From contig CM106586.1 of assembly GCA_048013815.1 (NCBI GenBank), positions 1,984,001 to 2,047,900 on the forward strand: a stretch of 63,900 bases of DNA, given 5' to 3'. The notes beneath the pieces are model-generated. The model saw nothing but the letters and a program-made list of their open reading frames with translations. It was not told the origin of the DNA and made no database searches. Origin of the DNA: Setoptus koraiensis. Taxonomy: Eukaryota > Animalia > Arthropoda. A program made the position numbers and the translations under genes. Shown in pieces: positions 1 to 43,225 of the stretch (position 1 is its first letter; each line of letters begins with the position of its first letter).

Positions 1-1
1 C

Positions 2-3000
2 GCCACAGGCTCACTAGATGGCGATCTACTGAATGCACAAAATGCGGCGGCTTACACAAACTACAGACCAATTCAACAAGATGTTGTTTCCGGTGAGTTT
101 GGAGGAGAGCTAGCAGCAAACCGATTCGAGTCACAAACAGCATCTAGTGCACATGACAGCAGTGGCGCATTTTCACCAAATTTTCATGTCGGATTATCGT
201 TGGATCGAGCTACACGACCCCGAGCCAGTTTCATGAGCGCTCCAGAATTAGAATTTATGAGTTCTGTGTCGCAGCAAGAACAAATGGGCAACAACTTAGA
301 GGGAGCTACTGGTGCACGAGAGACACTTTCACAACCTTTCGCCACTGAACATTTTGCAGCAATCAACAAGTTTGACAAGCTGAACGATGCTGACAAGATG
401 AGCGATCTAGCTGGGTCTGCATTTTCATTTGGTCACGAGGCACAACTCAATGCCATGCCATCCATGGCCGTAGATTATCAACAACAGCAGCAGATGCAGC
501 AAAATGAGTATCTCAATGGTGGCTATTGGCCAACAATTGATGGCAAGTCGTTTGAAGAACAGCAGCCATCTACAGTGAGAGAATTGAATCTAGCTAATTT
601 GAAACAGATACAAAACACAGAAACAGTCGCGATACTAGCAGCGCCGCAAAGTACCCCTATCGGGCAACCAACTGGCAGTATGCAAATACCGTTAGATGGA
701 AAAGATGAGCAAACACAATTGTCATCTCAACCTATTCCAACAAACCTGTCACCTCTGACTGCTGCCAGTCAGACGGTCAGTATTGATGCATCGAAGGAGT
801 CGCAAAGTGCCGATAATATGATCGCTTCATCTGTGTCAGCTTCGACTGACTTGCCACAACCAACAGTTGCTAGTGCATCAGTAGCTACAACAGCTACTTC
901 AGCTGCCGAAAACTCGTCGAATGCAGTAGCTTCGAATGATGTCCGAGCGGCAACATCCGGGCCCAGCATTGTTGCAAGTGGCAACAGTAGTGCAATAAGT
1001 GCGACAAATGAACTTTCAACTATTGCGCAATCATCGACAGCTAACGACATCACGAATCCTTCCTCAATTGTTGACAGTTCAGCAACACTCCTGAAGGAGC
1101 GGATAGTTGATCCGTTGACAACTGTGGAAAAAGGTATCCTAGACAGCGTTTCGAATGCCTTCCAAATACTTGGCTCAACTGCTCAAACAGTGACTAGTGA
1201 AGCATCAACTGCATCAGTAGTGACTGACAATGTTGCCAATAGCCAATCTAGTAGTTCCAGATCAGGCCTAGAAGTATCACAGACTTCCAATACAAATGGT
1301 GCGACTGCATCAGTCGAAGTGACTTCCGGTGGCAACTCGAATACGACAGTAAGCTCAATTGTTGCTGATGAAACAATTTCTCAAACTAATTCGAGCCAAT
1401 CATCAGTTTCAACCAGCGACACGAGTGATGTAACCAGATCTTCCGTTTCTACGTCTTCGTCGGCAACCGTTGACAATGGCCAGACGCAAAATACTTCGGA
1501 GAGTGCTTCATCGGCCACAACGACGGCTTCCTCAGCGAGCTCGTCAGCAGTCGCAAGCAACACTGACCAGTTGATAGGCGATAGCAGAAGCGCACTGCCA
1601 GATTCTGTTCCAGCGAGTAATCAACAACTTTCGATGAAAAATCAATCTTCGCAGGCATTGAATGAGAACGTGCAAACTGACCAGAAGCAATTATCTCAAA
1701 CAATCGTTACCAGTGGCAATCCATCTGTGAATACTGGCAGCAATCAACTAAAAATAGATGCAAACTCTCAGGCTCTTGCCGAGAGCATTGGATTGAGCTC
1801 CACTGGAACGTTGTCACCTGCAAAAGTCGTTGATTCGAACAATTTTGCTCAAACGTCTTCTATAAGCCCCTCGATAGGTAACACAGACATAGAATCCAGC
1901 TCTGATGAAAATGCACAGAGCAAAATCAATGAATTGCAGCCCGTTGATCAGGTTGCTGGTCAACAAGACATGTCGGGATTTTTTCAAAAAGGTCTTCAAC
2001 TGCCCGACAACCCATACATTGATCAGTACCCTCAGTTTGATGCTTATGGCAACAATTTGGCTGGTTTTATGTCAGCACAAGGCCAGTCGAGAGCTTCGGC
2101 GATAGACGCCCCCGAAAACAGTTTGCCAAGTGGTTTCACGCCGGTTCAATCGCTAAGCTCTTCGGGTGGCTCGAATATTGCATCTAGCAACTCTGAATTG
2201 GTTAGAGAAGAGAATGAATTGCAGCTCGGCAACAAGTTTGTTCGTGAGCAAGATATTCAAGCTCTGCCTCAAATGGATAGACGATTTCTCTACAATCCTT
2301 ACATGAATATCGCAACAAGCCCATTTATGAGTCAACAATTTGAGACTTTTAGTAACAATCTAGTGGGAGCCAACGCAGCACCTTCATCGGCCGCATTTCA
2401 GGATGATTATCCGCCAAGTTCATCAACTCCCGCAATTGCTTCATCGGCTGCCACGACAGGTTTCTCTGAAACCTCATCAGAAGTAGGAAGCAACACTGAC
2501 CAATCGATAGGCGACAGCGGGAGTGAGTTTTCAGTCACGGCTAACCAATTGGCAATGAAGAGTTCATCTGCGAGCAGATCAGAGGAGGAGAACATTTCTC
2601 TTCAAACTGATCAAAGGCAAATTTCTCCAATTGACACCGCTGCCTATCCAACTATGGATACTGTCAGTAATCAATTGAAAAACGATGCAGACTCTCAGCA
2701 TATTGCCAGCAGCACCGAATTGACATCGACAGATATGCTGTCACTTGCAAAGGCCAATGAATTAGATGGTTCTGCTCAAGCGCCTTCGCCAAGCTCCTCA
2801 TTGGGTAGCTCAGACGATGCGTCTGTCTCTAACGATATTTCGAGTGGAACAACCAATGACTTTCAGTTCGCCGACCAGATTGCTGGTCAGCAAGACACTT
2901 CCGGTTTTCCTCTTCTCTATCCACAAATACCATACAATCCATACATGAATGGTTATCCCGAATATCCTATGTTCCATGCTTATGGCAACAACTTCGCTGG

Positions 3001-5185
3001 ACTCATACCAGCAGAAGATGAGCTTAGAACATCGACGAACATTGAGACCCCAGAAATAGTCGCATCTGCGAGCCAGGCAACTATTCCAGCTCTAAGCTTA
3101 TCTGGTATCTCAGACACCGCTAGCTTGAAAATTGATACAGGCTCTCGGGCTCTTGTCACCGGGCCAAGCTCGACTGGTATTTTGTCAACAGTTAAAGGCA
3201 ACAATTTGGCTCAATCGTCCTCATTGAGCTCCTCATTGGGTAGATCAGATCTTGCATCCAGTGCCACTAACATTCCAAGAACAACTACCGATGAATCGCA
3301 GCTTGCCAACGAAATTGTTGGTCAGCAGGTCACTTCCGGTTTTCCTCTTTTCTATCCACAAATACCATACAATCCATACATGACTCAGTATCCCGATTAT
3401 CCTCAGTTTGGTGCTGCCGGCGACAATTTGGCTCAATTCACTGCACCAGAGAATGAGCTGAGAACATCGACGAATATTGGGGCGCAAGAAAGAGTCTTAC
3501 ATGCGAGTCAGGCAACTATTCCAGCTCTAAGCTTAGCTGGTAGCTCAGAGGCTGCATCTACCACCGCTAGTTCGGAAATTGATGCAGACTCTCAGGTTCT
3601 TGCCAAGGGCACCGGATCAAGCTTGGCTGGTATGTTGTCACCAGAGAAGGTCGAAAAATTGGATAGTTTTGCTCAAGCGCCTTCTATACAGTCTTCAATA
3701 GGTAACTTTGAAGTCGCATACAACGCCGATGACATTACGCAGAGAGAAATCGACGAGTTGCCGCTCATAAATAAGATTGTGCAGCAGGACATTTCAGGTT
3801 TTTCCCCGAGAGTTCCTCAGTTGCCTTACAATCAATACCTGACTCAGTATCCAGAATATCCCATGTTTCATGCTTATGGCAACAATTTAGCTGAGTTCAT
3901 GTCTGCAGAGGAACAGTTGAGAGCATCGACAAACATTGGGATCCCAGAACGAATTGCATCCGCAAGTTATGCAACAATTCCATCTTTAAGCTTACCAGAT
4001 AGCCCAGAGGTTGAATCCAAGTTGAAAATAGATTCAGACTCTAAGGCTCTTGTTGAGAGCACTGGGTTGAGCTCGATGTTGTCACCAGAAAAGGTCGACA
4101 GACCGACTGTTTCCCTGAAGTCGTCATTGGGCAGTTCAGACGTAGCATCTATCACCACTGACAGCTCTGGCGGAGAAACCAATGAAATGCAGATCAGCAA
4201 CCAGATTGTCGATCAGCAAGATATATCCGGTTTTCCTCCGTTCGATCCGCGAATGCCATACAATCAATTCATGACTCAGTATCCTGAGTATCCCATGTTT
4301 CATGCTTATGGCGATAATTTCGCTGGATTTGTGTCCAAAGAGGAAGAGCTGAAAGCATCGATGAACGCTGAGGCCCGTGGAGGAATTGTATCGGTTGCTC
4401 CAACTTCGATCATATCAGGCAGCTCAGATGATATATCTAGCGCTGCTAAGTTGACGACCGAAAATAAGATGTCTCAAGACAGATTAACTCTTCCCCAGAT
4501 AGATTCACAGTTGCCTTTCAATCCGTATATTCCATATATTAATGATGTCAATCTTTGGCCCGGTGCTGCCCGAGACGCAAACTATCTAGTTCGCCCAGAA
4601 GCTACTATGACGGATCAAGTCATGAATGTTTCTAAAACAGTCTCATCCGGAGATCAGTTGAGAACTTCAGCGGATTCAGATACGTCTGCGAGTTCCACGA
4701 TGGCCATGTCCGCCCCAGAACTTCGACCTAAGGCTGATATCTCAAGAGTACAGGCTATTGATATGATTCGAGGCGAACAACAAGGCTCATTGGGGGCTTC
4801 TGAGATGGATAGTGTCAATGATCAATTGAAAATTGATTCAACTCTCCAAAATCAGCAATTTCTTCCTGCCCAGGGCATTGGTTACTCACCTTACATCCCG
4901 CCATCACCGATGGAACAATCAGATGTAGCAGCTGGCCTCGTGCGAGCATCGTTATCGAGTTCCTCGACAGGTAGCTCGGATGTTGTGTCCAGTAGCAGCC
5001 AAGCTGTGGCAAACGCGAATGACTTGCAGCCAATGAACATTTTAAATTCCCCTACATTGAATCCGCGAATGCCATATAATCCATACGACTATTTTAATCC
5101 TCAGCTCAACAATTACGCGCCATCTTTCTCTGATATCCCGAATATCCTATGTTCCACGCCTATGGCGAAAATATGGCTGGATTAA
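2..5185 (+). CDS. 5'-truncated N-terminal part of a giant Ser/Ala/Thr-rich repetitive protein with Tyr/Pro motifs (structural, probably secreted; function inferred)
   Basis: The frame of ORF 200..5185 is open back to position 2 (ATGSLDGDLL...), so the start lies left of the window. It has eight or so QQD-SGF..PYNPY..YP(E/D)YP.F.AYGNN-type modules separated by Ser-rich spacers. The last 17 codons (after 5134) are an out-of-frame reading of the same motif. Confidence 0.8.
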   Translation, partial: ATGSLDGDLLNAQNAAAYTNYRPIQQDVVSGEFGGELAANRFESQTASSAHDSSGAFSPNFHVGLSLDRATRPRASFMSAPELEFMSSVSQQEQMGNNLEGATGARETLSQPFATEHFAAINKFDKLNDADKMSDLAGSAFSFGHEAQLNAMPSMAVDYQQQQQMQQNEYLNGGYWPTIDGKSFEEQQPSTVRELNLANLKQIQNTETVAILAAPQSTPIGQPTGSMQIPLDGKDEQTQLSSQPIPTNLSPLTAASQTVSIDASKESQSADNMIASSVSASTDLPQPTVASASVATTATSAAENSSNAVASNDVRAATSGPSIVASGNSSAISATNELSTIAQSSTANDITNPSSIVDSSATLLKERIVDPLTTVEKGILDSVSNAFQILGSTAQTVTSEASTASVVTDNVANSQSSSSRSGLEVSQTSNTNGATASVEVTSGGNSNTTVSSIVADETISQTNSSQSSVSTSDTSDVTRSSVSTSSSATVDNGQTQNTSESASSATTTASSASSSAVASNTDQLIGDSRSALPDSVPASNQQLSMKNQSSQALNENVQTDQKQLSQTIVTSGNPSVNTGSNQLKIDANSQALAESIGLSSTGTLSPAKVVDSNNFAQTSSISPSIGNTDIESSSDENAQSKINELQPVDQVAGQQDMSGFFQKGLQLPDNPYIDQYPQFDAYGNNLAGFMSAQGQSRASAIDAPENSLPSGFTPVQSLSSSGGSNIASSNSELVREENELQLGNKFVREQDIQALPQMDRRFLYNPYMNIATSPFMSQQFETFSNNLVGANAAPSSAAFQDDYPPSSSTPAIASSAATTGFSETSSEVGSNTDQSIGDSGSEFSVTANQLAMKSSSASRSEEENISLQTDQRQISPIDTAAYPTMDTVSNQLKNDADSQHIASSTELTSTDMLSLAKANELDGSAQAPSPSSSLGSSDDASVSNDISSGTTNDFQFADQIAGQQDTSGFPLLYPQIPYNPYMNGYPEYPMFHAYGNNFAGLIPAEDELRTSTNIETPEIVASASQATIPALSLSGISDTASLKIDTGSRALVTGPSSTGILSTVKGNNLAQSSSLSSSLGRSDLASSATNIPRTTTDESQLANEIVGQQVTSGFPLFYPQIPYNPYMTQYPDYPQFGAAGDNLAQFTAPENELRTSTNIGAQERVLHASQATIPALSLAGSSEAASTTASSEIDADSQVLAKGTGSSLAGMLSPEKVEKLDSFAQAPSIQSSIGNFEVAYNADDITQREIDELPLINKIVQQDISGFSPRVPQLPYNQYLTQYPEYPMFHAYGNNLAEFMSAEEQLRASTNIGIPERIASASYATIPSLSLPDSPEVESKLKIDSDSKALVESTGLSSMLSPEKVDRPTVSLKSSLGSSDVASITTDSSGGETNEMQISNQIVDQQDISGFPPFDPRMPYNQFMTQYPEYPMFHAYGDNFAGFVSKEEELKASMNAEARGGIVSVAPTSIISGSSDDISSAAKLTTENKMSQDRLTLPQIDSQLPFNPYIPYINDVNLWPGAARDANYLVRPEATMTDQVMNVSKTVSSGDQLRTSADSDTSASSTMAMSAPELRPKADISRVQAIDMIRGEQQGSLGASEMDSVNDQLKIDSTLQNQQFLPAQGIGYSPYIPPSPMEQSDVAAGLVRASLSSSSTGSSDVVSSSSQAVANANDLQPMNILNSPTLNPRMPYNPYDYFNPQLNNYAPSFSDIPNILCSTPMAKIWLD

Positions 5186-8100
5186 CCACAGCAGAGCAGG
5201 AGATGATAGCTCCGGCGAGCATTGAAGCCTCGAAAAGCAGCCCCTTTGCTGGTTATGCATCAGTTCCATCTCTAAGCCCATCAGGTAGCTCAAATGTCGC
5301 ATCTGTCACCACTGGCATTGCACTGTCGAAAGCATCCTCAAATATTCCAGCTGATACGAAGCGTGCATCGAATAACGATCTGTTATTTGAGACTCGCAAG
5401 CCGATTGAGACAGAACTGGGTAGCTCTATACCGAGCTCTCCCCAAATGTTTGATTCCAACGGTAGATATTTGCCTACATTTGATCCATGGTTGCAATCAC
5501 GGCCAGTTATAGAGCCACCAATCTTTTACAGTGATAAAAGAATGGCCTATGCACCTATTTTGACTTCAAATCCAATCGACCGGGATGCAGTCAGCCTGTC
5601 ACACTCCCTGCCCGAACTTATTCCGGTTGTGCCCATCAGTGTGCCATCAGCAACAGGTACCGCTGTTGCTTCCTCAGACTCTAATGGACAATCAAGAATC
5701 GAAGGTGATCTGGCGATACGTAGCGATTCACTGGCTGAGACACGACCGTTACGTGCTGCGGCCCCATCGATCACATCAGCCTCCCCAGGTTGGTCAGCGG
5801 CAACCACGCCAATTCCGTCTGCAATCACAACAGCAGTTGACGGCAACATTGACCAATTGATGGGCGACAGCATTAGTGGACTTTCACAACTCTTTCCTGT
5901 AGGCGAACAACTTCCGATGACAAGTCTAACCTCACAGGTTCTAAATGGCATATCACCTACTGATCAGAGGCAAGTATCTGCAACGGTGATCGATGGCTAT
6001 CCCCAAAATGATGTTGCAAATCAATTGAAAATTGATGTAGACTCTAAGGGGATTGTCCAGAACAACGGCTTGAGCCAGATCGACATGTCTCCTTCAAAAC
6101 TTGACAAATCGGCTGGTTTTTCTCAGAAGAATTCTCGAGGAAACTCCAACCTCTCAGCCAGCACTACTGAACTTGGAGCAGAAGTAACCAATGATTCACA
6201 GCTCGCTGACAAGGTTGATAGTAAACAAGAAATATCTGAATTTTTTCGGAGAGATACTCTATTGCCCTACAATCCATACATTATTCAGCAGCCTCAGTTT
6301 GATGTTTATAGCAACGATTTGGCCCGTTTTATGTCAGCACAAGACCAGTCAAGAGCTTCAACGATAAGCGCCTCCCAAGGAACGTCAGCTAGTGTCAAAC
6401 CGATCGCACCTATTAGGTCCTTAGGTATCTCGGATGTCGCATCTGGTAACACTGGCATCGTTAGAGCAGCGAATGAATTGCAGCTCGACAACCAGATTGC
6501 CGGTGAGCAAGACATTCGACCTTTTATTCCAATGGATCAACAATTTCCTTACAATCCATACATGAATATCCCAAATAGTCCCTTTATGCGTGATGTTGAT
6601 CGACAATTTGAGACTTTTAGCAACAATTTAGTCGGAGCCAACACAGAACCTTCTTCTGCAGCCTTCGAAAATAGTCAGTTGCAAAGTTCATCCAATTTAG
6701 CAAGGGCTTCATCGGCTGCCATGACAGATTTCTCTGTAACCTCTCCAGCGATTACGAGCAATGCTGCCGATTTTATTGGCAACAGTGAGAGCGGACTCTC
6801 TGATGTCGTTCCGGTCGAAAATGAACAATCGGCAACGAACAGTCTATCTGCGAAGAGATCCGATATTTTGAATCAAAAATATCAAAGTCAAATATCTCCA
6901 ATTGTCACCGATTCATCCTTGAATACTGTCGGTAATCAATTAGAAGTTGATAAAGACTCTCAGGCTTTTGCCATGAGTGCTGGATTGAGATACGCTGGAA
7001 CTTTGTCAGCTGCAAAAGTCAACGAAGCGGATGGCTTTGCTCAGAGGTCTTCACTGAGCTCCTCATTGGGTAGCTCAGACGTCGCACCTACCAACAATCA
7101 TATTCCATGGGGGCCAGCTAATGAATTGCAGCTCGCCGACAATATTGTCAATCTGCAGGACATTTCAGGTTTTTCCCCGAGAGTTCCTCAGTTGCCTTAC
7201 AATCAATACCTGACTCAGTATCCAGAATATCCCATGTTTCATGCTTATAGCAACAATTTAGCTGAGTTCATGTCTGCAGAGGAACAGTTGAGAGCATCGA
7301 CAAACATTGGGATCCCAGAACGAATTGCATCCGCAAGTTATGCAACAATTCCATCTTTAAGCTTACCAGATAGCCCAGAGGTTGAATCCAAGTTGAAAAT
7401 AGATTCAGACTCTAAGGCTCTTGTTGAGAGCACTGGGTTGAGCTCGATGTTGTCACCAGAAAAGGTCGACAGACCGACTGTTTCCCTGAAGTCGTCATTG
7501 GGCAGTTCAGACGTAGCATCTATCACCACTGACAGCTCTGGCGGAGAAACCAATGAAATGCAGATCAGCAACCAGATTGTCGATCAGCAAGATATATCCG
7601 GTTTTCCTCCGTTCGATCCGCGAATGCCATACAATCAATTCATGACTCAGTATCCTGAGTATCCCATGTTTCATGCTTATGGCGATAATTTCGCTGGATT
7701 TGTGTCCAAAGAGGAAGAGCTGAAAGCATCGATGAACGCTGAGGCCCGTGGAGGAATTGTATCGGTTGCTCCAACTTCGATCATATCAGGCAGCTCAGAT
7801 GATATATCTAGCGCTACTAAGTTGACGACCGAAAATATGATGTCTCAAGACAGATTAACTCTTCCCCAGATAGATTCACAGTTGCCTTTCAATCCGTATA
7901 TTTCGACCATCGCAAATAATCCATATATTAATGATGTCAATCTTTGGCCCGGTGCTGCCCGAGACGCAAACTATCTAGTTCGCCCAGAAGCTACTATGAC
8001 GGATCAAGTCATGAATGTTGCTAAAACAGTCTCATCCGAAGATCAGTTGAGAACTTCAGCGGGTTCAGATACGCTGGCGAGTTCCTCGGTGGCCATTCTC

Positions 8101-9936
8101 CAAAATCAGCAATTTCTTCCTGCCCAGGGCATTGGTTACTCACCTTACATCCCGCCATCACCGATGGAACAATCAGATGCAGCAGCTGGCCTCGTGCGAG
8201 CATCGTTATTGAGTTCCTCAACAGGTAACTCGGATGTTGCGTCCAGTAGCAGCCAAGCTGTGGCAAGCGCGAATGACTTGCAGCCAATGAACATTTTAGA
8301 TTCCCCTACATTTAATCCGCGAATGCCATATAATCCATACGACTATTTTAATCCTCAGCTCAACAATTACGCGCCATCTTTCTCTGATTCGAGTTTTGCA
8401 GAAGATCAGGTGAGAGGTTCAATTGAAACATCTTCGTTCGCAAACGAGCAATCCTCTCTCAATCGATTGAAAGTTGATACAGATTATCAGCCTGTTGCAC
8501 AGAATGTCGAATCGAGTTCACCCTCAATAGATAACAAATCTGCTGGTCTTGCTCCAGCGTCCTCTTCAATCTCCGAATTGGGTGGATCAAGCGTCGCATC
8601 CAGCAGTGCTGACATCGTTAGAGCAGCGAATGAATTGCAGCTCGACAACCAGATTGCCGGTGAGCAAGACATTCGACCTCTTATTCCAATGGATCAACAA
8701 TTTCCTTACAATCCATACATGAATATCCCAGATAGTCCCTTTATGCGTGACGTTGATCGACAATTTGAGACTTATAGCAACAACTTTGTCGGAGCTAATG
8801 CAGCATCTACGACCACCTTAGATGATGATCGGATGCAAATTTCATCAACTCCTGCAAGTGCTCCATCGCTTGTCTCAACAGGTTCCTCTTCAGCCTCATC
8901 AGTAGTTGGGAGAAATACTGACCAATGGATCGGTGACAGTGAGAGCGGACTCTCTGATGTCGTTCCTGTCAAAAATGAACAATTGGCAACGAACAGTCTA
9001 TCTGCAGAAAGATCAGCCATTTCACTTCAGACTGATCAGATGCAAATATCTCCAGTTTTGACTAATGGCCACACATCCTCTATCATTAATCTATTGAAAA
9101 ATGATGGAGACTCTCAGTTTGTTGGCATGGGCGCCCGATTGGGCTCGACTGGTTTGATATCGCCTGCAGTTGTCGACGAATCAATTGGTTCTGCCCAAGC
9201 GTCTTCTCTGGGCTCCTTAATGGGTAGCTCAGACGTTGCATCCAGTGCCACTGACATTCCACGAACAACAACTGATGAATCGCAGCTTGCCAACGAAATT
9301 GTTGGTCAGCACGACACTTCCGGTTTTCCTCTTTTCTATCCACAAATACCATACAATCCATACATGAATGGTTATCCCGAATATCCTATGTTTCATGCTT
9401 ATGGCAACAACTTCGCTGGACTCATACCAGCAGAAGATGAGCTTAGAACATCGACGAACATTGAGACCCCAGAAATAGTCTCATCTGCGAGCCAGGCAAC
9501 TATTCCAGCTCTAAGCTTATCTGGTAGCTCAGACACCGCTAGCTTGAAAATTGATGCAGGCTCTCGGGCTCTTGTCACCGGGCCAAGCTCGACTGGTATT
9601 TTGTCACCAGCTGAAGGCAGCAATTTGGCTCAATCGTCCTCATTGAGCTCCTCATTGGGTAGATCAGATCTTGCATCCAGTGCAACTGACATTCCAAGAA
9701 CAACTACCGATGAATCGCAGCTTGCCAACGAAATTGTTGGTCAGCAGGACACTTTCGGTTTTCCTCTTTTCTATCCACAAATACCATACAATCCATACGT
9801 GACTCAGTATCCCGATTATCCTCAGTTTGGTGCTTCTGGCGACAATTTGGCCCAATTCACTGCACCAGAGAATGAGCTGAGAACATCGACGAATATTGGG
9901 GCGCAAGAAAGAGTCTTACATGCGAGTCAGGCAACT
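2885..9936 (+). repeat. Intragenic duplication: 2885..3517 repeated at 9304..9936
   Basis: Collinear, near-identical 633-bp blocks at a constant offset of 6419. Confidence 0.9.
3785..8388 (+). repeat. Intragenic duplication: 3785..5134 repeated at 7156..8388
   Basis: Aligned by eye: near-identical at offsets 3371, 3389 and 3254, with an 18-nt insertion in copy 2 (7903-7920) and a ~135-nt segment present only in copy 1. Confidence 0.95.
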
Positions 9937-12900
9937 GCTCCAACTCCTATTTTATCAGGTAGCTTAGAGCCTGGATCTAGCATTGCTAGATTGAAAAACG
10001 CTGCAGACTCTCAGGATATTGCCATGAGTACCGAATCGATATCCACCGGTATGCTATCACCTGCAAAGGCTGATAAGGCTCTTGCTGCAAACTCCCAGGC
10101 TCTTGACATGGTTGTCGGCTTGAGCTCGAATGATCTTGCTCAAGTGCTTCCACTGAGCTCCTCTTTGGGCAGCTCAGACGTTGCGTCTGTCTCTAACGAT
10201 ATTTCGAGTGGAACAACCAATGACTTTCAGTTCGCCGACCAGATTGCTGGTCAGCAAGACACTTCCGGTTTTCCTCTTTTCTATCCACAAATACCTTACA
10301 ATCCATACATGACTCAGTATCCCGATTATCCTCAGTTTGGTGCTTCTGGCGACAATTTGGCTCAATTCACAGCACCAGAAAATGAGCTGAGAACATCGAC
10401 GAAATTTGAGGCCCCAGGAATAGTCTTATCTGCGAGTCAGGCAACTGTTCCTGCTCTAAGTTCATCTGGTAGCTCAGAGGCTGTATCCAGCGCCTCCAGT
10501 TCGAAAATTGATGCAGACTCTCAGGTTCTTGCCAAGGGCACCGGATCAAGCTTGGCTGGTACGTTTCAGATAGATGCAGACTCCGAGATTCTCGCTAAGA
10601 CTGGATCCAGCTTGAATGTTTTGTCGTTACCAGCGAACATCGTAAAATCGGCTGGTTTCGCTCGAGCGTCTTCTCTGAGCTCCTCATCTGGTAGCTCAGA
10701 CGTTGCAGCCTTCACAACTGACATTTCGGGTAATTCCAATGAATTGCGGATTTCTGAACAGATTGCTGATCGGGACACTTCAGGTTTTGCTCCTTTACAC
10801 CCACGAATTCCATACAATCCATTCGATAATTTTTATCCTCAGCCCAGCAATTACGCGCCCTCTTTCGCTGATTCGAGTTTTGCAGAAGATCAGCTGAGAC
10901 GTTCAGCACAAACATCTCCATTCGGAGACGAGCAATCCTCTCTCAAAAGTGTCAAGAATCATTTGAAAGTTGATGCAGATTATCAGCCTGTTGCACAGAA
11001 TGTCGGATTGAGCTTCACTAGAGCATTGTCACCTGCGAAATTCATGGAATCAAATGATTTTGCTCAAGCATCTTCGTCAATCTCCGCATTAGATAGCTCA
11101 GACGCAGCATCTAGCATCTCTAACTCCGTGCTGGATGCATCCAATGAATTGCAGCTCGGCAACAAGTTTGCCGGTGAGCAAGACATTCGACCTTTTATTC
11201 CAATGGATCAACAATTTCCTTACAATCCATACATGAATATCCCAAATAGCCCCTTTATGCGTGATGTTGATCGACAATTTGAGACTTTTAGCAACAATTT
11301 AGTCGGAGCCAACACAGAACCTTCTTCTGCAGCCTTCGAAAATAGTCAGTTGCAAAGTTCATCCAATTTAGCAAGGGCTTCATCGGCTGCCATGACAGAT
11401 TTCTCTGTAACCTCTCCAGCGATTACGAGCAATGCTGCCGATTTTATTGGCAACAGTGAGAGCGGACTCTCTGATGTCGTTCCTGTCAAAAATGAACAAT
11501 TGGCAACGAACAGTCTATCTGCAGAGAGATCAGCCATTTCACTTCAGACTGATCAGAGTCTAATATCTCCATCTGTCACCATTGGCTATCCACCTGCGAA
11601 TACTGTGAGTTATCAATTTGGAGTCGATGCAGACTTCAATGCTGCAGCCCACAACACCGAATTAATTTCATCTTCATCAGACGAAAAATCGGCTGGTTTG
11701 GCTCAAGCATACTCTCCGATTTCCGCATCGGAAAGTGCCAGCATCACTGACATTTCGAAAGGAGCCACCGATGAATTGCATCTTGGCAACCAGATTGTCG
11801 GTCTGCAAGACATTTCCGATTTTCCTCAATTCAATCCACAAATGACATACAATCCATTCATAAATATAGCACCTAGTCCATTCATGAATAATGTTGACCA
11901 GCAATTTGGGGCTTTCAGCAACAATCTAAACCAATTTAGAGCTGAAACGGATCAACTGAAATCGAGTACTTCAGCAACCTCATCAGACGTCGCAGCAAGT
12001 GAATCGGGAGCTTCAAACTTTGCCGATGTATCTGCGAAAGCTGCAGCCGTAACCCCGAAACTTATATCCCTTCAAGAGAGAGCAATGAGTGATGGCCAGC
12101 TTCCAGTGATAAGCGATCGCATCGAGGCCAATGTCGGGCATTTGAGCCGAGACCAATCTGAAATGCTTGCTGCTGACGGTAACATCCTGCCGAACATCGA
12201 TCCCTTCTTGCAATTGAGGCCAGTTATGGAGCCATCAGTCTATTACAGTAATAGTAGAATGGCTCCTGAGCCGGTTCTTAGCGCTGCCAGCAACGAACAA
12301 TCGGCAATGAACGGTTTATCTGCACCGATCTCAAATGATATAGTACATGATGATCAGATGCAAATATCGCCAATTGCCACTAATGGTTATTCCTTGAATA
12401 CTGTCGGTAATCAGTTGAAAATTGATGCAAACTCTCAGGCTTTCGCTGAGAGCATCGGATCGAGCTCGAGTGGTATGTTATCACCAGCTCAAGTCGACGA
12501 ATCAAGTGGTTTTATTCAAGCGTCTCCTCTGAGCTCCTCATTGGGTGGCTCAGACGTTGCATCCATCATCACTGATATTCCGAGAGCAACAACAATTGAA
12601 TTGCAGCTTCCAGATCAGATTGCTAGTCCGCATGATGCTTCGACCTCTCGTCCCTTCGAACCACGAATGCCATACATGACCCATTATCCCGAGTATCCTC
12701 AGCTTGTTGCTTACGGCAACAATGTGGCTGGATTCACTTCAGCAGAGGAAGAACTGCGAGCATCGACGAACATTAGGGCCCCAGAGCGATTTGTATCGGC
12801 AAATCATGCAACAGTTCCATCTGCAAGCTTTTCAGGTAGCTCTGAGGCTATATCTAGCGCCGCTGGGTTGCAAATCGATGCAGACTCCGAGTTTCTCGCA

Positions 12901-14419
12901 AAGACTGGATCGAGCTTGAATGGTTTGTCGTCACCAGCAAACATCGAAACATCGGCTGATTTCGCTCAAGCGTCGTCCCTGGGCCCCTCGACAGTCGTAA
13001 CTCACCTCAATAACATTCCAAGAGAAGCATCTAATGAATTGCAGTTTGTCGACCAGACCGCTGGTCAACAAGATATGTCAGGTTTATTCCACAGGGATTC
13101 TGGATTGCCGTACAATCATTACGCGAATGCCCCGAGTAATCAATTCCTGATGTCTTCTCAAATGATTGAGTCTGATGGTAACTATTTGCCGGCTATCACT
13201 CCGTCCTCACAGACTACTCCAGTTGAGGGGCCATCAATTTATTATAGTAATGATAGGAATGGCCCTGAACCGAGTGCAGCGATGAGCAGCTCTGTCAGTT
13301 CAGACGTCAATCTTTCACCATTATCCTCCCAGCTGGATGTTGCTTCATCTACTTCCGGCAGCACAGGACCCACAGTGGTTAGTGCACCATTGAGTTCAGG
13401 CCCTCTCGAGCGCTTTGATATTCCAAATTTGAATAGTCTATCCACTGTCGAACAAATGTCAATAGATAGGTACTCAAATTCAATGGGGAGTTTGGCTTCG
13501 ATGCGTGATGAAGAAGACCTCTCTATTTCCAACAACTACGCCCTTAGTGGCTCTATGTTGCCATACCGAGAGACTTCGAGCGATGCACAAGCATCCTTTG
13601 ATACTTCGGTTCAAATTCCATCCGATATAGATCACAGATCTGACTCTAACAACAATGCACTGGCTTCGAGTGATCAATTTATGAAACATATTCTAACGAC
13701 TAATGAAGTGAATGAAGAAGATAATTTTATTAGTAATCAGGCCAGTTCTGCAATAAACAATGATCGGGTGTCATTAGAAGAGCTCTCATCTCAGTCTATA
13801 AAGCAACAAGCACCAACACTAGCTTCTGTCACTAACACTAACCCCATGTTTCAATTAATGTCGCCTTTGAGCGACAATAACGATAGAGAAAAGATTACTC
13901 TTAACATTAACAATGACAACAACAACAATTATAACTTAGATAATTATGTTGTGCAAGAAACTAAAAATCACTACTACACACCTGCTATATCAACGGTTGT
14001 AAATGGCATTACAAATGATAATGCCCTTACAACTGCAACCACCACTACTGCAACTACCATAACTACCAAACAACAACCTCACCTAAAAAACCAAAAACTA
14101 CAACAACAACAACGACAAATGCTTCGTGATAAAACCCAAATCGATACCATACATCAATCATCATTAAACCAAAACCGACTACCAACCATGACGTCCGACG
14201 GCACATCCCTCATTCATGATGATCGCCTCTCACTATCGTCGGCACGACCTAATCTCGCCTTGCCATTGAGTCCTATTGAATTGACTTTGTTACAAACATT
14301 GTCGCTTAATAACAACAATGCCGTTCAAAATTCAATGCTACCCACCATTGACAACAACAACAACAACAACTACCGTTACTTTGATCAACAACAACAATCC
14401 GACTTACGCTCCGACACCG

Positions 14420-14468
<49 letters not shown>

Positions 14469-14852
14469 CTACAACTACAACTACAACTACAACTACAATA
14501 TCGCCACCGACCAACAATCGTTGCTATCGAACAACTACAACTATCAAACTTCCCTCTCCCCATCACTCGCTGCTACCCAAAATACTCTCGACACCCCAAA
14601 CATCCTCAACACTGAATCCTCTCCGTTTTCCGTCGCTAATCCCGCGATAAATAATCCCATAAATGAACTCTACTCGCAATCCGCTCTTTCCGACGCCCAT
14701 TCCGCTCTATACTCAACTCCCGAAAATCCTCTGAACATCCCCGACGATCCCGATCCCTTGTACTCTGCAATCGGCAATGAACGGCAATATCGCATAACGC
14801 AACGTGATCAACAAATGCTCGACGCAACGACTCAACTACAACTACAACAACT

Positions 14853-14883
<31 letters not shown>

Positions 14884-17800
14884 CCACTACTACTACTACC
14901 AACGCCGCTATCTAAACTGACTTCAACTTTGACGACTGCAACTGCGACGACACCGACATCACTTCCGACTTCTGCTGCATCCACCTCATCGCAACAACGT
15001 CAAACATCATCATCTATTGACAACCAATTTACACAACAACAATACCAACCAAACTATTTGACGACAACAACAAACGACGCTCTCGTTGCTGACGACTTCA
15101 CAACGGCAAACGGCGCTCAATTTATGCCACAACAACAACAACAACAATCATTTGATCGACTGCTTTACCCAATCAACAATGACTTGTCAACCGCCGCCTC
15201 AACCTCATCGTTGTCATCAATTGACAATCAACAATTATTTGAAACTATTGAAACAGGCTTGAAGAACAGACTCGCCGGTGGCGCTAGTTCGGCCGCCGCC
15301 TCATCTGCAGCTGGCGGCGGTGCGGCCTCATCAGCGGCTAGTTCCAGCTCGTCAGCGGGCGGTTCCGGTTTGGGAGCCGGTCCGCTTGGAGCGGGACTGG
15401 GACTGCTGGGCTCGTTGTCAAGCCCGTTCACTGGCGCACAACAATTGGGAGCGGCTGTTGGTTCGGCAAACGGTGCCACTAACCTGGGCTCGAAACTAAC
15501 AGGCTCAAACATAGGCAATGCTGTCGCTAGTACCTCGGGTGCCTTGACGGGTTCCGTGGGCAATGCGCTCAGTTCGGTGGGCGGAAATCTGGGCACTTTA
15601 ACCGATTTGTTCGTGAGCACTCCGTTGAGCGTCATCAATTCGGTGCCGGGCGCCGTGGCAGACTTTGGCCGTCTTATATCTCGACCGGTGGCCAGTGCCA
15701 TCGGAACGGCCTCGTCCGCGCTCACCAGTGGCACGCCCTCGTACGCGTCGCAACTATCTCACAGCGAATTGTCACAAGGTGCCCTGGCCAATGTCGCAAG
15801 TAGAAGCCTAGTCGAGCCTATAACCACTCTGGGCGGACTACAAACCGGCGGCTCGGGTGCCGCTTCGTCGGCATCGTCGGCCTCGTCCTCTTCGGCGGGC
15901 GGAGGCGCGGCGTCATCATCGGCGGCCTCGGCGTCATCAGGATCCTCGGGCGGCGGCGGCGGCCTGGGCATCATTGGCGGCCTGACCGGCCTGGGTGGTG
16001 TTGGCGGACTATTGACGGGCGGAGCGGGAATTGGCGGTGGCCAGACCAAACAGACCAGTACCACTACAACATCAACAAACAACGGGCTACTGGGTGGCTC
16101 TCAGCAAACAACTAGAACAACCACACAACAATCGTCTGACAACGGCGGCGGATTGGGTATAATGGGCGGCTACGGCGGCGTAGGAGGAGGCTCGTCGTCC
16201 GCCTCATCGGCCACATCGTCATCATCTGGATCATCGGGTAGTCCGCTTTTGGGCGCCGGAGTGGGTGGCGGCTCGTCATCATCAGCGGCATCGTCGTCAG
16301 CAGCGTCAGGCAACAGTGGCGGTATAGGACTTGGTCTGGGCTTGGGCGGATACAGACCAGGCTTCGGGCCGGGACCCGTGATCTACGGGGGCGGCCTCAG
16401 GGGTGGCGCCTCATCGTCTTCGGCAGCAGCGTCATCATCGTCAGCAAGCGGCGGCTCGGGTGTACTGGGCGGCTTAGGCGGCGGTTCATCAGCTAGTTCG
16501 GCGGCATCGTCGTCTTCGAGCGGCGGCATTGGCGGTGTCGGCCTTGGGGGCAGATATTTAGGCGGTGGCTACGGAATGGGCGTGGGATCAGTATTAAATG
16601 AGGGGAGTGCAGTCGGGCAGCTAGCAATGATGGACGGTAGAGCCGCAATGTATAATAATCTTGGTCGTCGTCACTACTATCTAGATGCAACAGGCGGATA
16701 CGGAGGATTGGCACAACAACAATCGGCGGCGGCCTCGTCGTCGTCGGCGTCGTCGGCGTCGTCAGCTGCGGGCGGCGGCCTAGGCCTGGGCGGGGGCGCC
16801 AGCTCGGCAGCCTCAACAACATCCACTTCTACAACATCAGTGGGCGGTGGCGGACTCGTAGCGGGCCGCCCGATAGGCTACCCGTTGGTGGGCGGCGGCG
16901 GCTTAACGAGCGGTCTGGCCAGTGGTCTGGCGGGAGCGGGCGCTCTCACCGGTTCGCTTATAAACTCTGCTGGCGCTGCGGCCTCAACGGCCGCGGCCGC
17001 ATCAACGGCAACGGCGAGTAACGTGGCGACCGGCGGTCTCGTGGGTGCAGGCGGTGTGATGAACAACGTCGGACTAATGGCTTCCGGTGCGGCTGGTGCA
17101 TTGAGTGGTGGATTGGGATTGAATGGAGCGGCTGGTTTATATGGTGGTGGTTTAGGAGGATACGGACCAGGAATGGGCGGATACGGACCGGGAGCAATGG
17201 GACTGGCGGCGGGTTCGGCGCTTGGCGCGCGCGGATACGGGCCTTTTGCTGGGGTTGGTTCAATGATTAATCCTCTTAAATCTGATCTAAATGAACAATA
17301 TTTGTCACGAGAGGCACAGTTAGCGGGCAATTATGCCAGTCAGGCAAACATTAAAGCTAGCATCAATAACAACAGAGCGGCCATAACGGGTTATGTCGGT
17401 GACAATTTGCGCGCCCACGTGTCCGATGTCAAGGCGGCCGAGGCAAATGCCCTGGCGGACGTGGCACAATCGAACGCTCTGGTAGAGCAAACAGCAAACA
17501 CGTTCAAGCAAGTGGGTCAATTAGCCGGCCAGGCAACAATAGCGGGCGCGGCGGCGGGTCTGGCGGGCGACGTGAGTCGCATTGGCGCGGCAACAGGCAG
17601 CGGACCGGCAACCATACCCGCAACATTGTCCGCAATGGGTCCCGGTATGATAGCGGGCGACGCGCTTGCAAACAATGCTCAAGATTACGCAATAGCTGGC
17701 AAAGAAATGGAACGTAGCACCGCCAACAATGTGGCCAATGCCGCCCTGGCCGGAAACGCCTACAGGGCGGCCAAGCTTGCGTCGGCCCGGGACAGTGTCA

Positions 17801-19080
17801 ATGTTGCGGGTACCATAAACAATGCGGCCACTATTAGCGACGCGGCTATTGCAACTCACAATGCGGCCAGCAAGGCAGAGGACGCTCTATTGGGCAGCGA
17901 GGTGGCCATGGACACTGCGGGCACTGTCTTTGATTCGGATGGCGCCTTCATACCCGACACCAAATACTCGCTGTTGCGTTCATTGCCCTACGGCAAGCTC
18001 ACCATGAGAAACATCTTGCCGCGCCCCTTGTCCGTGCCCAGTGCCCTGTTGCCCGACACATGGCTGAATGGTCGGCCCATAAACTATGGTCTGTCGCCCA
18101 TAAACAACTACGGCGGCTTGTACGGTTTCGGCAATCAATTCACAGCCGGCAGCGGTCTCAATCCCGGAGCGCCTCTTCCGCCCGGCCCGTGGTCTCCCGA
18201 GCTGCTGGGCTATCCGGCGGTGGGCGCCTTCTGGGGCGCAAATCCAATTTTGGGCGCACCCGGATTGGGCAGCGGACTGGGCACAAGTTTGGGCGCGGGT
18301 TTGGGAGCCGGTTTGCCGTTTTATGGTGCCGGTCCCGAGTCGACACTATTGGGGGCGGCACAATTGGCCTCATTTCCATTGGCCGCGGCACAACAATTGG
18401 CCTCTAGCGACCTGCAGGCACTGGGCTCTGTGTCGGCCAGCTTGGGCGGCCTAGTTCACCAGGGCGGAAATGGCATGCTATTGACGAGCACAACAACAGG
18501 CTCATCGATTATACCCGCCAGCGATACCGCCACCACATACCCGATTGGCTCAGCTTTAGTTATTGAACCCCGTGATTCATATTTTCAAGATTATCTAGAC
18601 GAGGCTACATCTCGTAAAAATTATAATGATGACGGCGACAATAATTCAATGAGAAACATAAATGCAGCTCGCCTAGGTAGCTCTCTGCCGGCGCCTTATT
18701 ATTATTCGCCACCACCATCCTATCCAATTATTAATCCAACACCATTCATTCAATCACCACTCATCCAACCAATAGCGTCGTTAGGTTCTGCTGCCACATC
18801 ATCAACAGCTGAATCGGCTAGCAGCGCCTCTAGTAGCGCAAGTAGCAGCTCAACAACATCCACTACCGCATCAACAAGCTCCAATGCCGGCGCTGGACTC
18901 TTAGGTGGTGTGTCGCCTTTCGGCGCAATGGGCCCCGCTATAGGTGGCGCTGGTGCTAGCACCACAAGCACAACCACCACTACGTCTAGTTCGGCCGGTG
19001 GAGCAGGTGGCGCTGGTGGAGCAAGTTCAGCGGCTAGTTCAGCTAGTTCGGCCAGTTCAGCCGGTTCAAGCATGGTCTAG
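5134..19080 (+). CDS. Main/C-terminal part of the giant protein: Tyr/Pro repeat region, Asn/Gln/Thr linker, Gly/Ala/Ser fibroin-like region and Ala-rich/Pro-Gly C-terminal region
   Basis: A 4,643-aa stop-free ORF (ATG 5149). The frame opens at 5134 with YPEYP-MFHAYG, the same motif seen in the upstream ORF, and it shares near-identical nucleotide blocks with that ORF. AATAAA follows at 19274. Confidence 0.85.
6472..11522 (+). repeat. Intragenic duplication: 6472..6851 repeated at 11143..11522
   Basis: Collinear, near-identical 380-bp blocks at a constant offset of 4671. Confidence 0.9.
14422..14499 (+). repeat. Coding microsatellite (AAC)16 followed by (TACAAC)5, giving N16-(YN)5
   Basis: Read directly from the sequence. 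Confidence 0.95.
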
Positions 19081-19273: not shown

Positions 19274-19279
19274 AATAAA
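19274..19279 (+). terminator. Candidate polyadenylation signal of the giant ORF
   Basis: AATAAA 194 nt after the TAG at 19080, within an AT-rich 3' region. Confidence 0.5.
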
Positions 19280-20842: not shown

Positions 20843-21400
20843 ATGCCTGCAAAATGCACTGATGGGCGCAAATCTTCGCCCAATCGTAACGAAGTTAGCG
20901 TTTCGGCAACTAGCAAAGTTCATTTCAAAGGATCACCATATAACACCGCAGTTGAATTGACGCAAAACAATCACTTAGATAAAAACAACACCAACATAGA
21001 CAACGGTACAGATTTTAGCGACAATGTCACTATGAAGCAACAAGTGACAATAAATGGTCTCTGGTCTAAGCGAGAGCTTGACCAGTCATACAATATCGAG
21101 ACATTCGATTTAGATGCAAATAGGCGAGATACAACTAATTATAATAGCAGGGCCCTAGCTCATCAGCAGACTGTTTGCAATTGGTCGCGGCCTGTGTTCA
21201 CCATTTATCAACGAGCTATTCTAGAAAGAAAGTTTTCGTTTCAAAAATATGTAACAAAGCAAGAGAGACAAGAGCTGGGCTTCATGTTGAATCTAAAGGA
21301 AACTCAAGTGAAAATATGGTTCCAAAACAGACGAATGAAATGGAGACGATGCACCACAGCTTCGATACAAAATAAAACTGCAGCATCACGGAACATCTAA
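20843..21400 (+). CDS. Hlx: Homeobox protein, Hlx/H2.0-like (ANTP/NKL class), single exon
   Basis: Homeodomain at ~21176-21352: [55 protein letters not shown]. The WSR.VF and QKYVTK signatures match HLX/H2.0, with Dbx as the next closest family. AATAAA at 21624. Confidence 0.8.
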
Positions 21401-30857: not shown

Positions 30858-32607
30858 TTGGTGAGTTGCAATTCGCAAGTGAGTTGCAGATAACGGTCAG
30901 TTTATAACGGACGGCGGCAGCAACTTTTCAGCTTGGCTTTGGTCACTGCGCACACAACATAACGGTATATCTGTGGGCAAGCAGCACACATTGTCGTTTG
31001 GCATATTTGGACAAGACAAAGATTGTTTCAGGATCACACCAGCAACAACTCTGCCTGGCAACGGGCTGCAGATGCACTAGGACAAGAGAAGAAAAAGTAT
31101 ACTAAATAGCACTGTTGTTGCCGTTGTTGTTGCCGTTGTTGCCGTTGTTGTTGCCGTTGTTGCCGTTGTTGTTGGTGTTGGTGTGTGCGAGCGTCCAATG
31201 TAATCAAATTGCAGACATGGTTGCGTTGGTTGGTAGTTGCGGCGACTGTTGCGCAACTTGCTCACTTTTCATCTGCATAAACAACATACAAACAAGAGGC
31301 AACATTACAGTGTAGAAACTGGTGGCCAACTTCATTTCAGTTTCATTCATTCATCAGCACACAACAACATCAATACACGACAACAACAACATCAGCAACA
31401 GCAACATCAGCAACATCAGCAACAACAACATCAGCAACAACAACAACCAAACGAATCAGTATAACCAATATCATGGTTGTGCAATAAAAGGCCGCCCCAT
31501 GCTATCGGCTGCAAACACACACACACACACACACACAACAGTTAGAGGCTGCAGTTGATCTTTGAATATTTGCAGTTGTAGTTGCCGCTACATCACATCA
31601 CATTACGTCATATCGCATGGCATGGCATGGCATGGCATGGGCTTAGGATAGCTGACAGGGGATAGCGTCGGATAAAATCGCATCGGATGGCATGTTATTG
31701 GCTAGTCGCATCATATCACATTGAATGGTGGTGGTCGTGGTCGGCCTACGTACACTAACAAACCAAACGTGTTTCGTGCCGTGTAGTGCAGTATTAAAAC
31801 ATTCATGTTATTTATGCGTTGCTTGTTGGCCATCACAACTATCCAATACTGCTCATATACATGTAGTGAACATTCTGCAAACCATGTTGTTCGTTAGCGA
31901 CGCTCTTTAACGTCATTACGCAATCAAAGCGCGCCATCCGTGCCAATGCAAACCAATCCAATTGAACCAATCCAATTCAACTCAATCCAATCAAATGCAA
32001 TCATCCAAACAAACGGCTATCATGCTCGTCACGCTCAACACAAGCCAGCCACAACTTGTAAATAAGCCGGCCGTCCAAGACATTAAGAGTTGTTGTTGGT
32101 GATGCCGCCGGTGGTAGCCGCTACTACTACTGCCACCACTGCCACCACTGGCACCACTGGCACCACTACTACTACCACTACTACTACCACCACTACTACT
32201 GATACTACACTAGCCACCTTTACTCACAAGCAGCAGCAGCAACAAAAACATTATGTAATATCTCTCGCAAACAGTGGCATCATATTAATCTCAACGAGTG
32301 CACACAAATTCAGCTAGCCGAGGCATAAACATTTTTGCGATAGTCGGTTCACCATAAACATTCACAGATAATCATCTATTTGCACTTGGCGTCACTTGCC
32401 AGTATCTGGCAGCAATTGGCGTGTATGGGTCGCCAAGCGTCGGCATCATTTAGCGAGCCAATACACAAAATCACAGTCATGATCTGCTAACAGTATGCAG
32501 TCTTGCTAAACTTAAACAGTCTTGTTAGATTAATGATTGAAGGCACACACACACACACACACGCACTCATGACCAATAAATAACAACAACAACAAGTGTC
32601 TGTCCAA

Positions 32608-33100
32608 ATGCCAAAAGAGAGCCTCTCGTTGGCGCCCGGTTCGCTGGGCTCCTCGGCCACGCCAACTTCATCGCCGGCCTCATCAACCAATGGCCTCAGC
32701 GAGCGCCCCTATTTCTCATCATGCCAAACTAGCAGCATAGATAGTTCATCAAATCGGGATTGTTACCATTTTACAATATTATCATCCAACTCGACAAGTT
32801 CGCAACAAATCGCGGCAGCCTTACATCAGCAACAACTGCACCAGCAACAACAACAACAACAACAGAGACCAGTGAATCATATTTATGATAATTTAAAGCT
32901 AACATCGGACAATGATCCCCGTCAGTTGTCTTCGTGTGAGCTTAGAAAGTGCTGTGAGAGATTGTTTCGTCCGCAACATGACAATAACCAACATGCAAAG
33001 ATAACACAGAAAACAACAAGTAAATCACTGGATAAAAGTTGCATCACTTATCAAGAATTATTATCTAGCCCGTATGTGGACAACAATAACACTAATCCTG

Positions 33101-33139
<39 letters not shown>

Positions 33140-39128: not shown

Positions 39129-39692
39129 ATGGCAGATGATTTCAAATCAGGCTCAACAATGAATCGTCAAGAGATGCTCAAGGCGGCCGTGTATTTTCTA
39201 CAAAATCCGCAACTGTCTGGTAGTCCACTAAGCTCAAAGAGAAAATTCTTACTAGATAAGGGATTATTAGAAGAGGAAATCGAGGATGCCATTAATCTAG
39301 CTCTAAGCCATGTGGCAAATAATCAACAGTCACCCCAGAAATCAAGTAAGTGGAACTTCTTACTTATATTGGGACTCTGCTACGGAGGCTATTCTCTCTA
39401 CAACTTTTACACGACATATAAAGAAACAAAGCGAATGGAAAAGCAACGCAAACTAGATGAAAATGCTCAAAAGAAACCAGTGTACACCCTCAAAGATATT
39501 ATGGACAGAATGTCGGCCATCCAACGCACTCTTGATCTACAAAAATCGTCCCTATCTAATGAGATCCAGTCTGTGAAATCTTTATTACTTAGTCATAATC
39601 AATTCACGGGGCCACCAACCATTCCAGCTTGGCAATTGAATGATGAAGAAAAGTCTAAGCCTGAATCACCAATTGCTCCCAATCCTGTATAA
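39129..39692 (+). CDS. PEX14: Peroxisomal membrane protein PEX14 (compact, 187 aa)
   Basis: Pex14 N-terminal domain (AVYFLQNPQL..SPLSSKRKFLLDKGL.EEEI), a hydrophobic segment (WNFLLILGLCYGGY), a coiled coil, and the conserved IQSVKSLLL...QF..P..IPAWQ motif. Confidence 0.93.
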   Translation: MADDFKSGSTMNRQEMLKAAVYFLQNPQLSGSPLSSKRKFLLDKGLLEEEIEDAINLALSHVANNQQSPQKSSKWNFLLILGLCYGGYSLYNFYTTYKETKRMEKQRKLDENAQKKPVYTLKDIMDRMSAIQRTLDLQKSSLSNEIQSVKSLLLSHNQFTGPPTIPAWQLNDEEKSKPESPIAPNPV

Positions 39693-42600: not shown

Positions 42601-43225
42601 CACGGTATGTTGCAACATACACGGATTTTTTTATCTTTTTAACCTGACTCATTTGCTTATTTTGCACCACCGACCTAATTTGTACCGAGTTCTTTTGACT
42701 TTGTGCTCTCTCTATACTAAGATCCGATTGTTTAACAGGTGAAGCGATTGACGGTTGCCGTATTTCACTCATAGAGTATATCTCTGTATCACTACTGTTG
42801 TAATTACTAGATTCGTCGTCTGAGCTAACATTGTCAGTGTCTTCTGAATCACTGGAGGACGAAATAATGTCAAATTTGTCACAGTCCTTCTTTTTTCTTT
42901 TCCTACTGTAAAGAGTTGCAGCATTCAACCTATTTTCTTCAATTTGCTCTGCAATTCTGCTATATTCCAAGGAGGATTTCGAATCAATTTTCTTAGTGAA
43001 ACGTTTCAGACCTTTCGTTTGCATATATGATGTTGAATGCAATTTGTTCTGTTGCTCAGGATCCAGTCGATACTGTTTCAAATCCTCAATTAGATTTGTT
43101 CTATTTGATTTTAGCTTTCTCCTTTGGACAACTTTTTCTAATTTCTTTTTCTGCTTGTGTGACACGATGGCGGCAGTCGCCAAACGGCGTGCCTCCATCT
43201 TTTTTCTAATATCCATTCGACCCAT
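39655..43225 (-). CDS. DHX37: DEAH-box RNA helicase DHX37/Dhr1/kurz; exons 43225..39829 and 39743..39655 (1,161 aa)
   Basis: Motifs GETGSGKTTQLPQFL, IIDEAHERS, MSAT, ATNVAETSLTIP and QRKGRAGR. An 85-nt GT-AG intron at 39828..39744 (T|GTGAGT...ATCAG|AC) restores the family-like C-terminus YLKQEYLLWLPESLH. Confidence 0.95.

Follow-up and report, generated by a model that had tools for sequence, protein, structure and literature searches.

The left end of a 63,900-nt stretch of the Setoptus koraiensis genome (hereafter the window) carries a giant reading frame. On balance, we read it as one gene for a secreted, acidic, cysteine-free and largely disordered structural or adhesive protein of at least ~7,625 amino acids (aa), a roughly tenfold, lineage-specific enlargement of a family of short proteins. 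The frame is open, its C-terminal part belongs to that family and has no separate start, and the only break in the frame is bridged in frame by contigs from sequencing reads. Judged by sequence, the last ~1,270 aa (15265-19080), which make up the family part, are the orthologue of a family whose sole named member is eriophyoid. Coordinates without a prefix are window positions; those prefixed L002 refer to genomic DNA fetched to reach upstream of the window.

A giant open frame with a predicted signal-peptide exon

Open reading frame (ORF) analysis showed frame 2 running uninterrupted from window base 2 until a stop at 5185, and frame 1 doing so between 5149 and the stop at 19078-19080. No segment had a stop in the coding frame, whereas the other five frames each contained 31-195. 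The longest open stretch comprised 4,648 codons, as compared with at most 210 in 50 shuffles of the same DNA. These results bear out a preliminary description of the window, made from the sequence alone, which had claimed that the frame runs open from the window edge as far as 19080, interrupted by a single break. That description had also advised extending the sequence leftwards. When this was done, the same frame proved to extend, still open, a further 3,694 nt to L002:6306, and a signal-peptide-like exon was found upstream. The protein is therefore giant, as had been stated, but the earlier figure of at least ~6,350 aa was too low, the joined model coming to ~7,625 aa.

The gene would consist of a 124-nt signal-peptide exon, a 403-nt intron and a single ~22.8-kb exon, and in this model the earlier term 'apparently intronless' no longer applies. 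The exon 1 product starts with two lysines, continues with a 16-residue hydrophobic core and has a T-D-A cleavage-type end. Exon 1 amounts to 41 codons plus one base, and the GT at L002:5922 matches in phase the first AG past the upstream in-frame stop (L002:6323-6324), with a CTAAC branch-like site ~45 nt ahead of this acceptor. The sequence TATAAAAG lies ~215 nt upstream of the exon-1 ATG.

Searches were run piece by piece or exon by exon, and the joined model, with an X at the break, was used for composition only. The whole model is 15.5% Ser, 10.5% Ala, 9.0% Asp+Glu and 4.8% Lys+Arg. Cysteine, already noted as essentially absent, is found at 0 of 7,625 residues. Consistent with the earlier statement that no enzyme domain is present, Pfam returned no domain at E<=1 for either piece of the giant frame. 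No second copy or paralogue of any part of the gene was found in this genome.

The C-terminal part belongs to a conserved secreted family

The preliminary description had proposed a search with the non-repetitive C-terminal part. An exhaustive HMMER (phmmer) search with 17269-18702 found nine proteins, eight of them at E<=1e-30 (1.4e-82 to 4e-31), and a profile search yielded 20 members. The members found in these searches are all 360-970 aa long. The only named one is hypothetical protein GZH46_00317 of Fragariocoptes setiger (KAG9511123.1), the others coming from public assemblies, where each is encoded by a single gene of ~600 aa on a compact, intron-poor contig. The C-domain shares 39-51% identity with those of its relatives and has 49 invariant positions, including NAYRxAKLAxARD and PRDxxFxDY. 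In most full-length members, an initial signal peptide leads into a G/L-rich stretch. Mature members are cysteine-free save for the fragment P0009 and the front of P0008, which is probably mis-annotated. Their Gly+Ala+Ser content is 31-50%, mostly 35% or more, and their Gly/Ala/Ser-rich repeat halves vary between species. This is a conserved secreted family, defined here, which has no Pfam description. The architecture had been put forward as unrecognised; its fibroin-like and Ala-rich third is homologous to this ~600-aa family.

The closest relative, with a C-domain 47% identical to that of S. koraiensis, is encoded by a gene of ~1,275 aa in two exons of ~586 and ~688 aa. The alignment starts immediately after its signal peptide, near window position 15340, and BLASTP to its first exon gave E=8e-08. 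A stop-rich gap of ~1.2 kb (L011:4184-5375), presumably an intron, separates its coding blocks; the members on other contigs are single-exon. A presenilin encoded on one family-member contig is 70-73% identical to the presenilin of this genome.

The family appears to be single-copy: one copy was found in the single genome searched in full, and the 20 members were drawn from many different sources. Its neighbours differ between loci. A DEAH helicase adjoins the family gene at two loci (L012 and L015/L016), DHX37 lies 20 kb off in the window, and the closest relative's gene neighbour has no counterpart in this locus; synteny was thus uninformative. One 635-aa member, P0014, was recovered from six runs of one study as contigs of 2.1-2.5 kb, with 5' ends within 75 nt of each other and no poly-A. 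This looks like the pattern of transcript contigs and gives no more than a hint of strong expression of the family. A literature search for the run and protein accessions gave no match.

Structure prediction added little on the C-domain. AlphaFold2 with nine sequences gave a predicted local distance difference test score (pLDDT) of 45.8 and long helices only, which is too poor for a fold search, and a homodimer prediction for the conserved helical core scored 0.00, which speaks neither for nor against self-association. The ESM Atlas held no usable match to the C-domain (best 0.76, a viral hypothetical cluster), and a profile search of the PDB returned chance-level matches only (E 0.18 and 0.94).

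The S. koraiensis protein differs from the family in size (~7,625 aa versus 360-970 aa). It carries ~6,350 aa of sequence unrelated to KAG9511123.1-like members, together with an extra tail of ~125 aa. Between 12500 and 15700, no Met followed by a hydrophobic start was found in any forward frame, and the family part therefore has no start of its own. The predicted signal-peptide exon lies 21 kb upstream of it. The mature end of the exon 1 product (AHLGLALGALGGG..) resembles the G/L-rich mature N-termini of the family, a similarity that is weak and of low complexity. This suggests that both ends of an ancestral gene may have been kept, with ~6,350 aa added between them. Full-length family members are built of a signal peptide, a fast-evolving Gly/Ala/Ser-rich repeat region and a strongly conserved, helical and Ala-rich C-domain ending in PRDxxFxDY. 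The addition would comprise a Ser/Pro/Asn-rich head, ~20 modules and an Asn/Gln/Thr linker. Protein searches with a 480-aa repeat unit and a 1,224-aa portion of the head found no homologues, within a scope limited by the length window of the tool and by low complexity.

Sequencing reads hold an in-frame form of the junction at the frame break

At the only frame break, the end of one motif (...NNYAPSFSD) abuts another (YPEYPMFHAYG) one base out of register. The preliminary description was right to count a single break and had called it a -1 break; it is a junction of non-homologous repeat positions, not a homopolymer slip or a simple indel. The right end of a recent internal duplicate (3784-5134) coincides exactly with it.

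Contigs from four public runs were aligned to 2400-8399; two of the runs were from one sample and the others from different studies, making three studies. In all four, the contigs carried, left of 5132, 67-160 letters resembling 2792-2951 in place of 5065-5131. This junction is in frame, base 2951 at codon position 1 being joined to 5132 at position 2, and its translation reads ..PYNPYMNG up to the junction and YPEYPMFHAYGEN.. beyond it. The Gly codon at the junction is unlike that of the copy at 2951, and the sites 2951 and 5132 share just 23 identical letters, fewer than the 31-letter words from which the contigs were built. The junction is therefore a separate genomic copy rather than a graph artefact. 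It was absent from the assembly, even when one mismatch was allowed. One read contig extended 511 letters leftward and revealed a repeat unit with no counterpart at this point of the assembly, and the true gene may be somewhat longer than assembled.

The assembly was made with Flye from error-prone PacBio long reads (CLR) of a pool of over 100,000 wild mites, with a heterozygosity of 1.13%. Since the reads hold an in-frame junction and the assembly is of this kind, the break is probably a mis-join, a collapsed repeat or a minor structural allele, and not a feature of the gene. Were it real, a truncated protein of ~2,990 aa would end at 5185. The other 13.9 kb, which include the family part, would then go untranslated or be in decay, or else be translated on their own from the ATG at 5149, with no signal peptide. 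The deposited assembly does carry the break, that ATG is present, and the non-homologous junction, where a recent 1.35-kb duplication ends, could be a genuine rearrangement. However, the 13.9 kb past the break contain no in-frame stop, a state that a dead region would not keep; four read sets join another repeat copy in frame to 5132, a junction missing from the assembly; and the assembly method is error-prone in repeats. We consider a real break distinctly unlikely. The practical consequence is that a probable assembly error inside the gene could lead annotators to split or discard it.

Anatomy of the protein

From its N-terminus the protein consists of six parts: signal peptide, head, modules, linker, Gly/Ala/Ser block with Ala-rich domain, and tail (Table 1). 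The three parts distinguished previously were correctly described in composition, but their number was too low. The head, of ~1,900 aa, is rich in Ser, Pro, Asn and Gln, and has recurring motifs resembling P-L-S-P-L-A-P-L-L. Each module joins an acidic Ser/Ala/Thr-rich spacer to an aromatic/proline motif, ..SGFPxxxPQxPYNPYMxQYPEYPxFxAYGNN.., of which there are at least three subtypes. The modules have diverged to 28-77% identity. Tandem Repeats Finder reported just three short microsatellite-type arrays, missing the modules because they are too diverged. Among repeat copies, the ratio of nonsynonymous to synonymous substitution rates (dN/dS) was 0.42-0.89, which indicates weak purifying selection. 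AlphaFold2, given one module with 17 paralogous copies as the alignment, returned a pLDDT of 50.6 and no secondary structure, a hint that the module is disordered.

Table 1. Positions of the gene's features, in window coordinates unless prefixed L002.
Feature	Position	Strand	Basis	Remarks
Exon 1, signal-peptide-like	L002:5798-5921	+	sequence, prediction	124 nt; ~4.1 kb before window
Predicted intron	L002:5922-6324	+	splice signals, phase	403 nt; GT-AG
Giant exon	from L002:6325; 1..5131	+	open frame	frame 2; start 3,676 nt upstream of window
Modules (~20 of ~145 aa)	1960..13150	+	self-comparison	predicted without secondary structure; S 16%, A 10%, P 7%, Y 3%
Recent internal duplicate	3784..5134	+	self-comparison; ~2x contig depth	97% identical to 7155-8388; 135-nt insertion
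Frame break (only one)	5131..5134	+	sequence, self-comparison, read contigs	frame 2 to frame 1
Second copy of recent internal duplication	7155..8388	+	self-comparison
Low-complexity linker, Asn/Gln/Thr/Ser-rich	13150..15265	+	open in coding frame only	poly-N, poly-Q and NY runs; S 14%, N 13%, T 10%, Q 10%
Gly/Ala/Ser-rich block	15265..17268	+	composition; family homology from ~15340	15265-17269: G 27%, S 19%, A 16%; Cys 0
Conserved C-terminal domain, Ala-rich	17269..18702	+	family homology	A 17%, G 12%
Invariant core of C-domain, Ala-rich, helical	17740-18087	+	alignment
Terminal P.G..PRD..F.DY motif of C-domain	18541-18594	+	alignment
Lineage-specific tail	18703..19080	+	past end of relatives	Pro/Tyr, then Ser/Ala/Gly/Thr
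Stop TAG	19078-19080	+	sequence
AATAAA, candidate polyadenylation signal	19274..19279	+	sequence only	~195 nt past stop

Points against a single secreted protein

Several observations weigh against the reading that we favour. In the one run search made, none of the public runs matching the stretch is recorded as RNA, and the published S. koraiensis assembly was made without a transcriptome. The splice between exon 1 and the giant exon is predicted. Values of dN/dS among the repeats lie just mildly below 1, and those of the two youngest copies exceed 1, with few changes and too few sites to judge. The read evidence at the break consists of de Bruijn contigs only; these establish the in-frame form but leave room for the out-of-frame form in the population. 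The proposed function draws on composition and on features of the family.

Finally, exon 1 left unspliced (L002:5798-5935) is a complete 45-codon ORF, in which a signal peptide is followed by a Gly/Leu-rich 14-mer and Gly-Arg-Arg-Thr-stop, the layout of an amidated-peptide precursor. Intron retention would yield this different small secreted product from exon 1. Alternatively, exon 1 could be a separate gene for a small secreted peptide. The giant frame would then start at an internal Met (the first at ~L002:6406) and encode a non-secreted, low-complexity cytoplasmic or nuclear protein; its head is N/Q/S-rich, like many nuclear low-complexity proteins. This arrangement seems improbable to us. 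It leaves aside the phase-compatible GT-AG pair with its branch-like site, and the homologous family is secreted in other species, to judge by its signal peptides. In addition, extracellular structural proteins typically lack cysteine and carry Gly/Ala/Ser blocks, as this one does, and Pfam found no domain typical of intracellular ones. The upstream signal-peptide exon, together with the signal peptides of the relatives, makes a secreted structural or adhesive role, as first suggested, the most reasonable one for a single giant protein.

Comparison with known structural proteins

The predicted gene layout resembles that reportedly found for the Bombyx mori fibroin heavy chain, in which a very small exon for the signal peptide is separated by one intron from a giant repeat exon of more than 15 kb, and both proteins have Gly/Ala/Ser-rich blocks. 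However, there is no sequence homology between them. The mite protein has no GAGAGS crystalline repeats and is mostly acidic Ser-rich spacer, and whereas fibroin H binds its light chain via cysteine, the mite protein has none. No homologue among lepidopteran or trichopteran heavy-chain fibroins was found in any protein search, and both the conserved N-terminus of these fibroins and their C-terminal cysteine, which links the light chain, are lacking. The likeness to spidroins lies in a fast-changing repeat core beside a conserved non-repetitive terminal domain. This domain is unrelated in the mite protein, which has no conserved N-terminal domain, and Pfam matched no spidroin N- or C-terminal domain on either piece (E<=1). 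The glue and fibre proteins of insects, such as Drosophila Sgs and the Chironomus Balbiani-ring proteins, are likewise very large, secreted, Ser/Thr/Pro-rich and built of repeats encoded in very long exons. They differ in having cysteines and regular short tandem repeats, in place of cysteine-free, diverged modules of ~145 aa.

A constituent of the cuticle matrix, rather than of silk, glue or cement, is a further possibility. The family would then be an eriophyoid-specific cuticular protein, and its enlargement a cuticular adaptation in this species. In arthropods, most proteins of the cuticle are cysteine-free and Gly/Ala-rich, as are nearly all members of the family, which also appears to be single-copy. 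Against this, Pfam matched neither of the chitin-binding domains expected of the R&R and CPAP types of cuticular protein (Chitin_bind_4 and CBM_14, the latter also written CBM14), and 7,600 aa is far beyond the usual size of cuticular proteins. We regard a cuticular role as unlikely.

Tetranychus urticae 'fibroins' are mite proteins labelled silk-like by their Ser/Gly/Ala composition, and no Tetranychus protein was among the matches of the exhaustive search with 17269-18702. Three of these fibroin candidates act as salivary proteins (PMC12534534), and naming by composition is therefore risky. The label 'silk/cement/eggshell' of the preliminary description has composition as its only ground. 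The salivary candidates also lend some colour to a mucin-like identity, in which the protein would be a heavily O-glycosylated lubricant or coating (of saliva, gut or egg surface) and its Gly/Ala/Ser part would be non-fibrous. Consistent with this, 22% of residues in 7.6 kb of coding sequence are Ser+Thr and 7% are Pro, and the product is acidic and predicted to be disordered. But gel-forming mucins have VWD and C-knot ends, which Pfam did not match; there are no cysteines to form Cys-rich end domains and no tight Pro/Thr/Ser (PTS) tandem repeats, and the conserved C-domain family would be left unexplained. A mucin-like identity seems rather unlikely.

In sum, none of the features tested for membership of the spidroins, heavy-chain fibroins, chitin-binding cuticular proteins or gel-forming mucins was found. 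Giant secreted repeat proteins are already known as a kind, and the present one falls outside the size range of its own family by an order of magnitude.

A possible role

If the protein is exported, as its predicted first exon would imply, it could form or coat an extracellular material. The C-domain may act as in the short family members, in assembly or anchoring, while the Gly/Ala/Ser block would supply cohesion. The long front could serve as a hydrated, probably glycosylated spacer with aromatic/proline stickers, and these might permit many weak contacts or tyrosine cross-links.

In a 2026 study, eriophyoid silk was proposed to come from anal glands that are ancestral to the group and functional even in web-less species, with silk genetics and proteomics named as future work (PMC13027148). 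It is conceivable, if rather improbable, that the family is the structural protein of this anal-gland silk or attachment secretion, enlarged tenfold in Setoptus by a ~6,350-aa sticker-and-spacer insertion that would yield a different material, more adhesive or bulkier. Cuticle, egg cement, spermatophore and saliva match the data equally well. No genes for eriophyoid silk, attachment, spermatophore or egg materials have been published, and the family is therefore a concrete candidate for such materials.

The S. koraiensis genome is ~48 Mb, with 5,954 annotated genes (PMC11920263). It is one of the smallest known from animals, and eriophyoid genomes are among the most reduced in arthropods, yet a ~23-kb coding exon has been kept for one protein, and the product is therefore probably needed in bulk. 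New repeat sequence has enlarged an otherwise compact gene about tenfold in this one lineage, which is an extreme instance of such growth.

Surroundings in the window

A homeodomain gene of 185 aa (20843-21400, + strand) lies 1.8 kb past the giant gene. Further along the same strand, an Asn/Gln/Ser/His-rich open frame of 1,928 aa (32596-38382) has poly-Q, poly-N and poly-T runs and Arg-rich stretches, with no Pfam domain, and probably encodes a nuclear low-complexity protein. It is followed by two intronless genes, one PEX14-like (187 aa, 39129-39692, + strand) and the other DHX37 (1,137 aa, 39812-43225, - strand), whose ORFs are convergent and ~120 nt apart. A GC-rich (52%) block at 55700-58774, with overlapping long frames on both strands, includes a reverse-transcriptase-like fragment (55700-56386) and a Pro/Thr/Ser-rich minus-strand frame of 394 aa; it looks like retroelement debris. 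A minus-strand frame of 724 aa (61216-63390) opens with the last part of a copia-type reverse transcriptase (RVT_2). The ~380 aa that follow, which include a hydrophobic stretch close to their end, are possibly an envelope-like addition to a Ty1/copia element.

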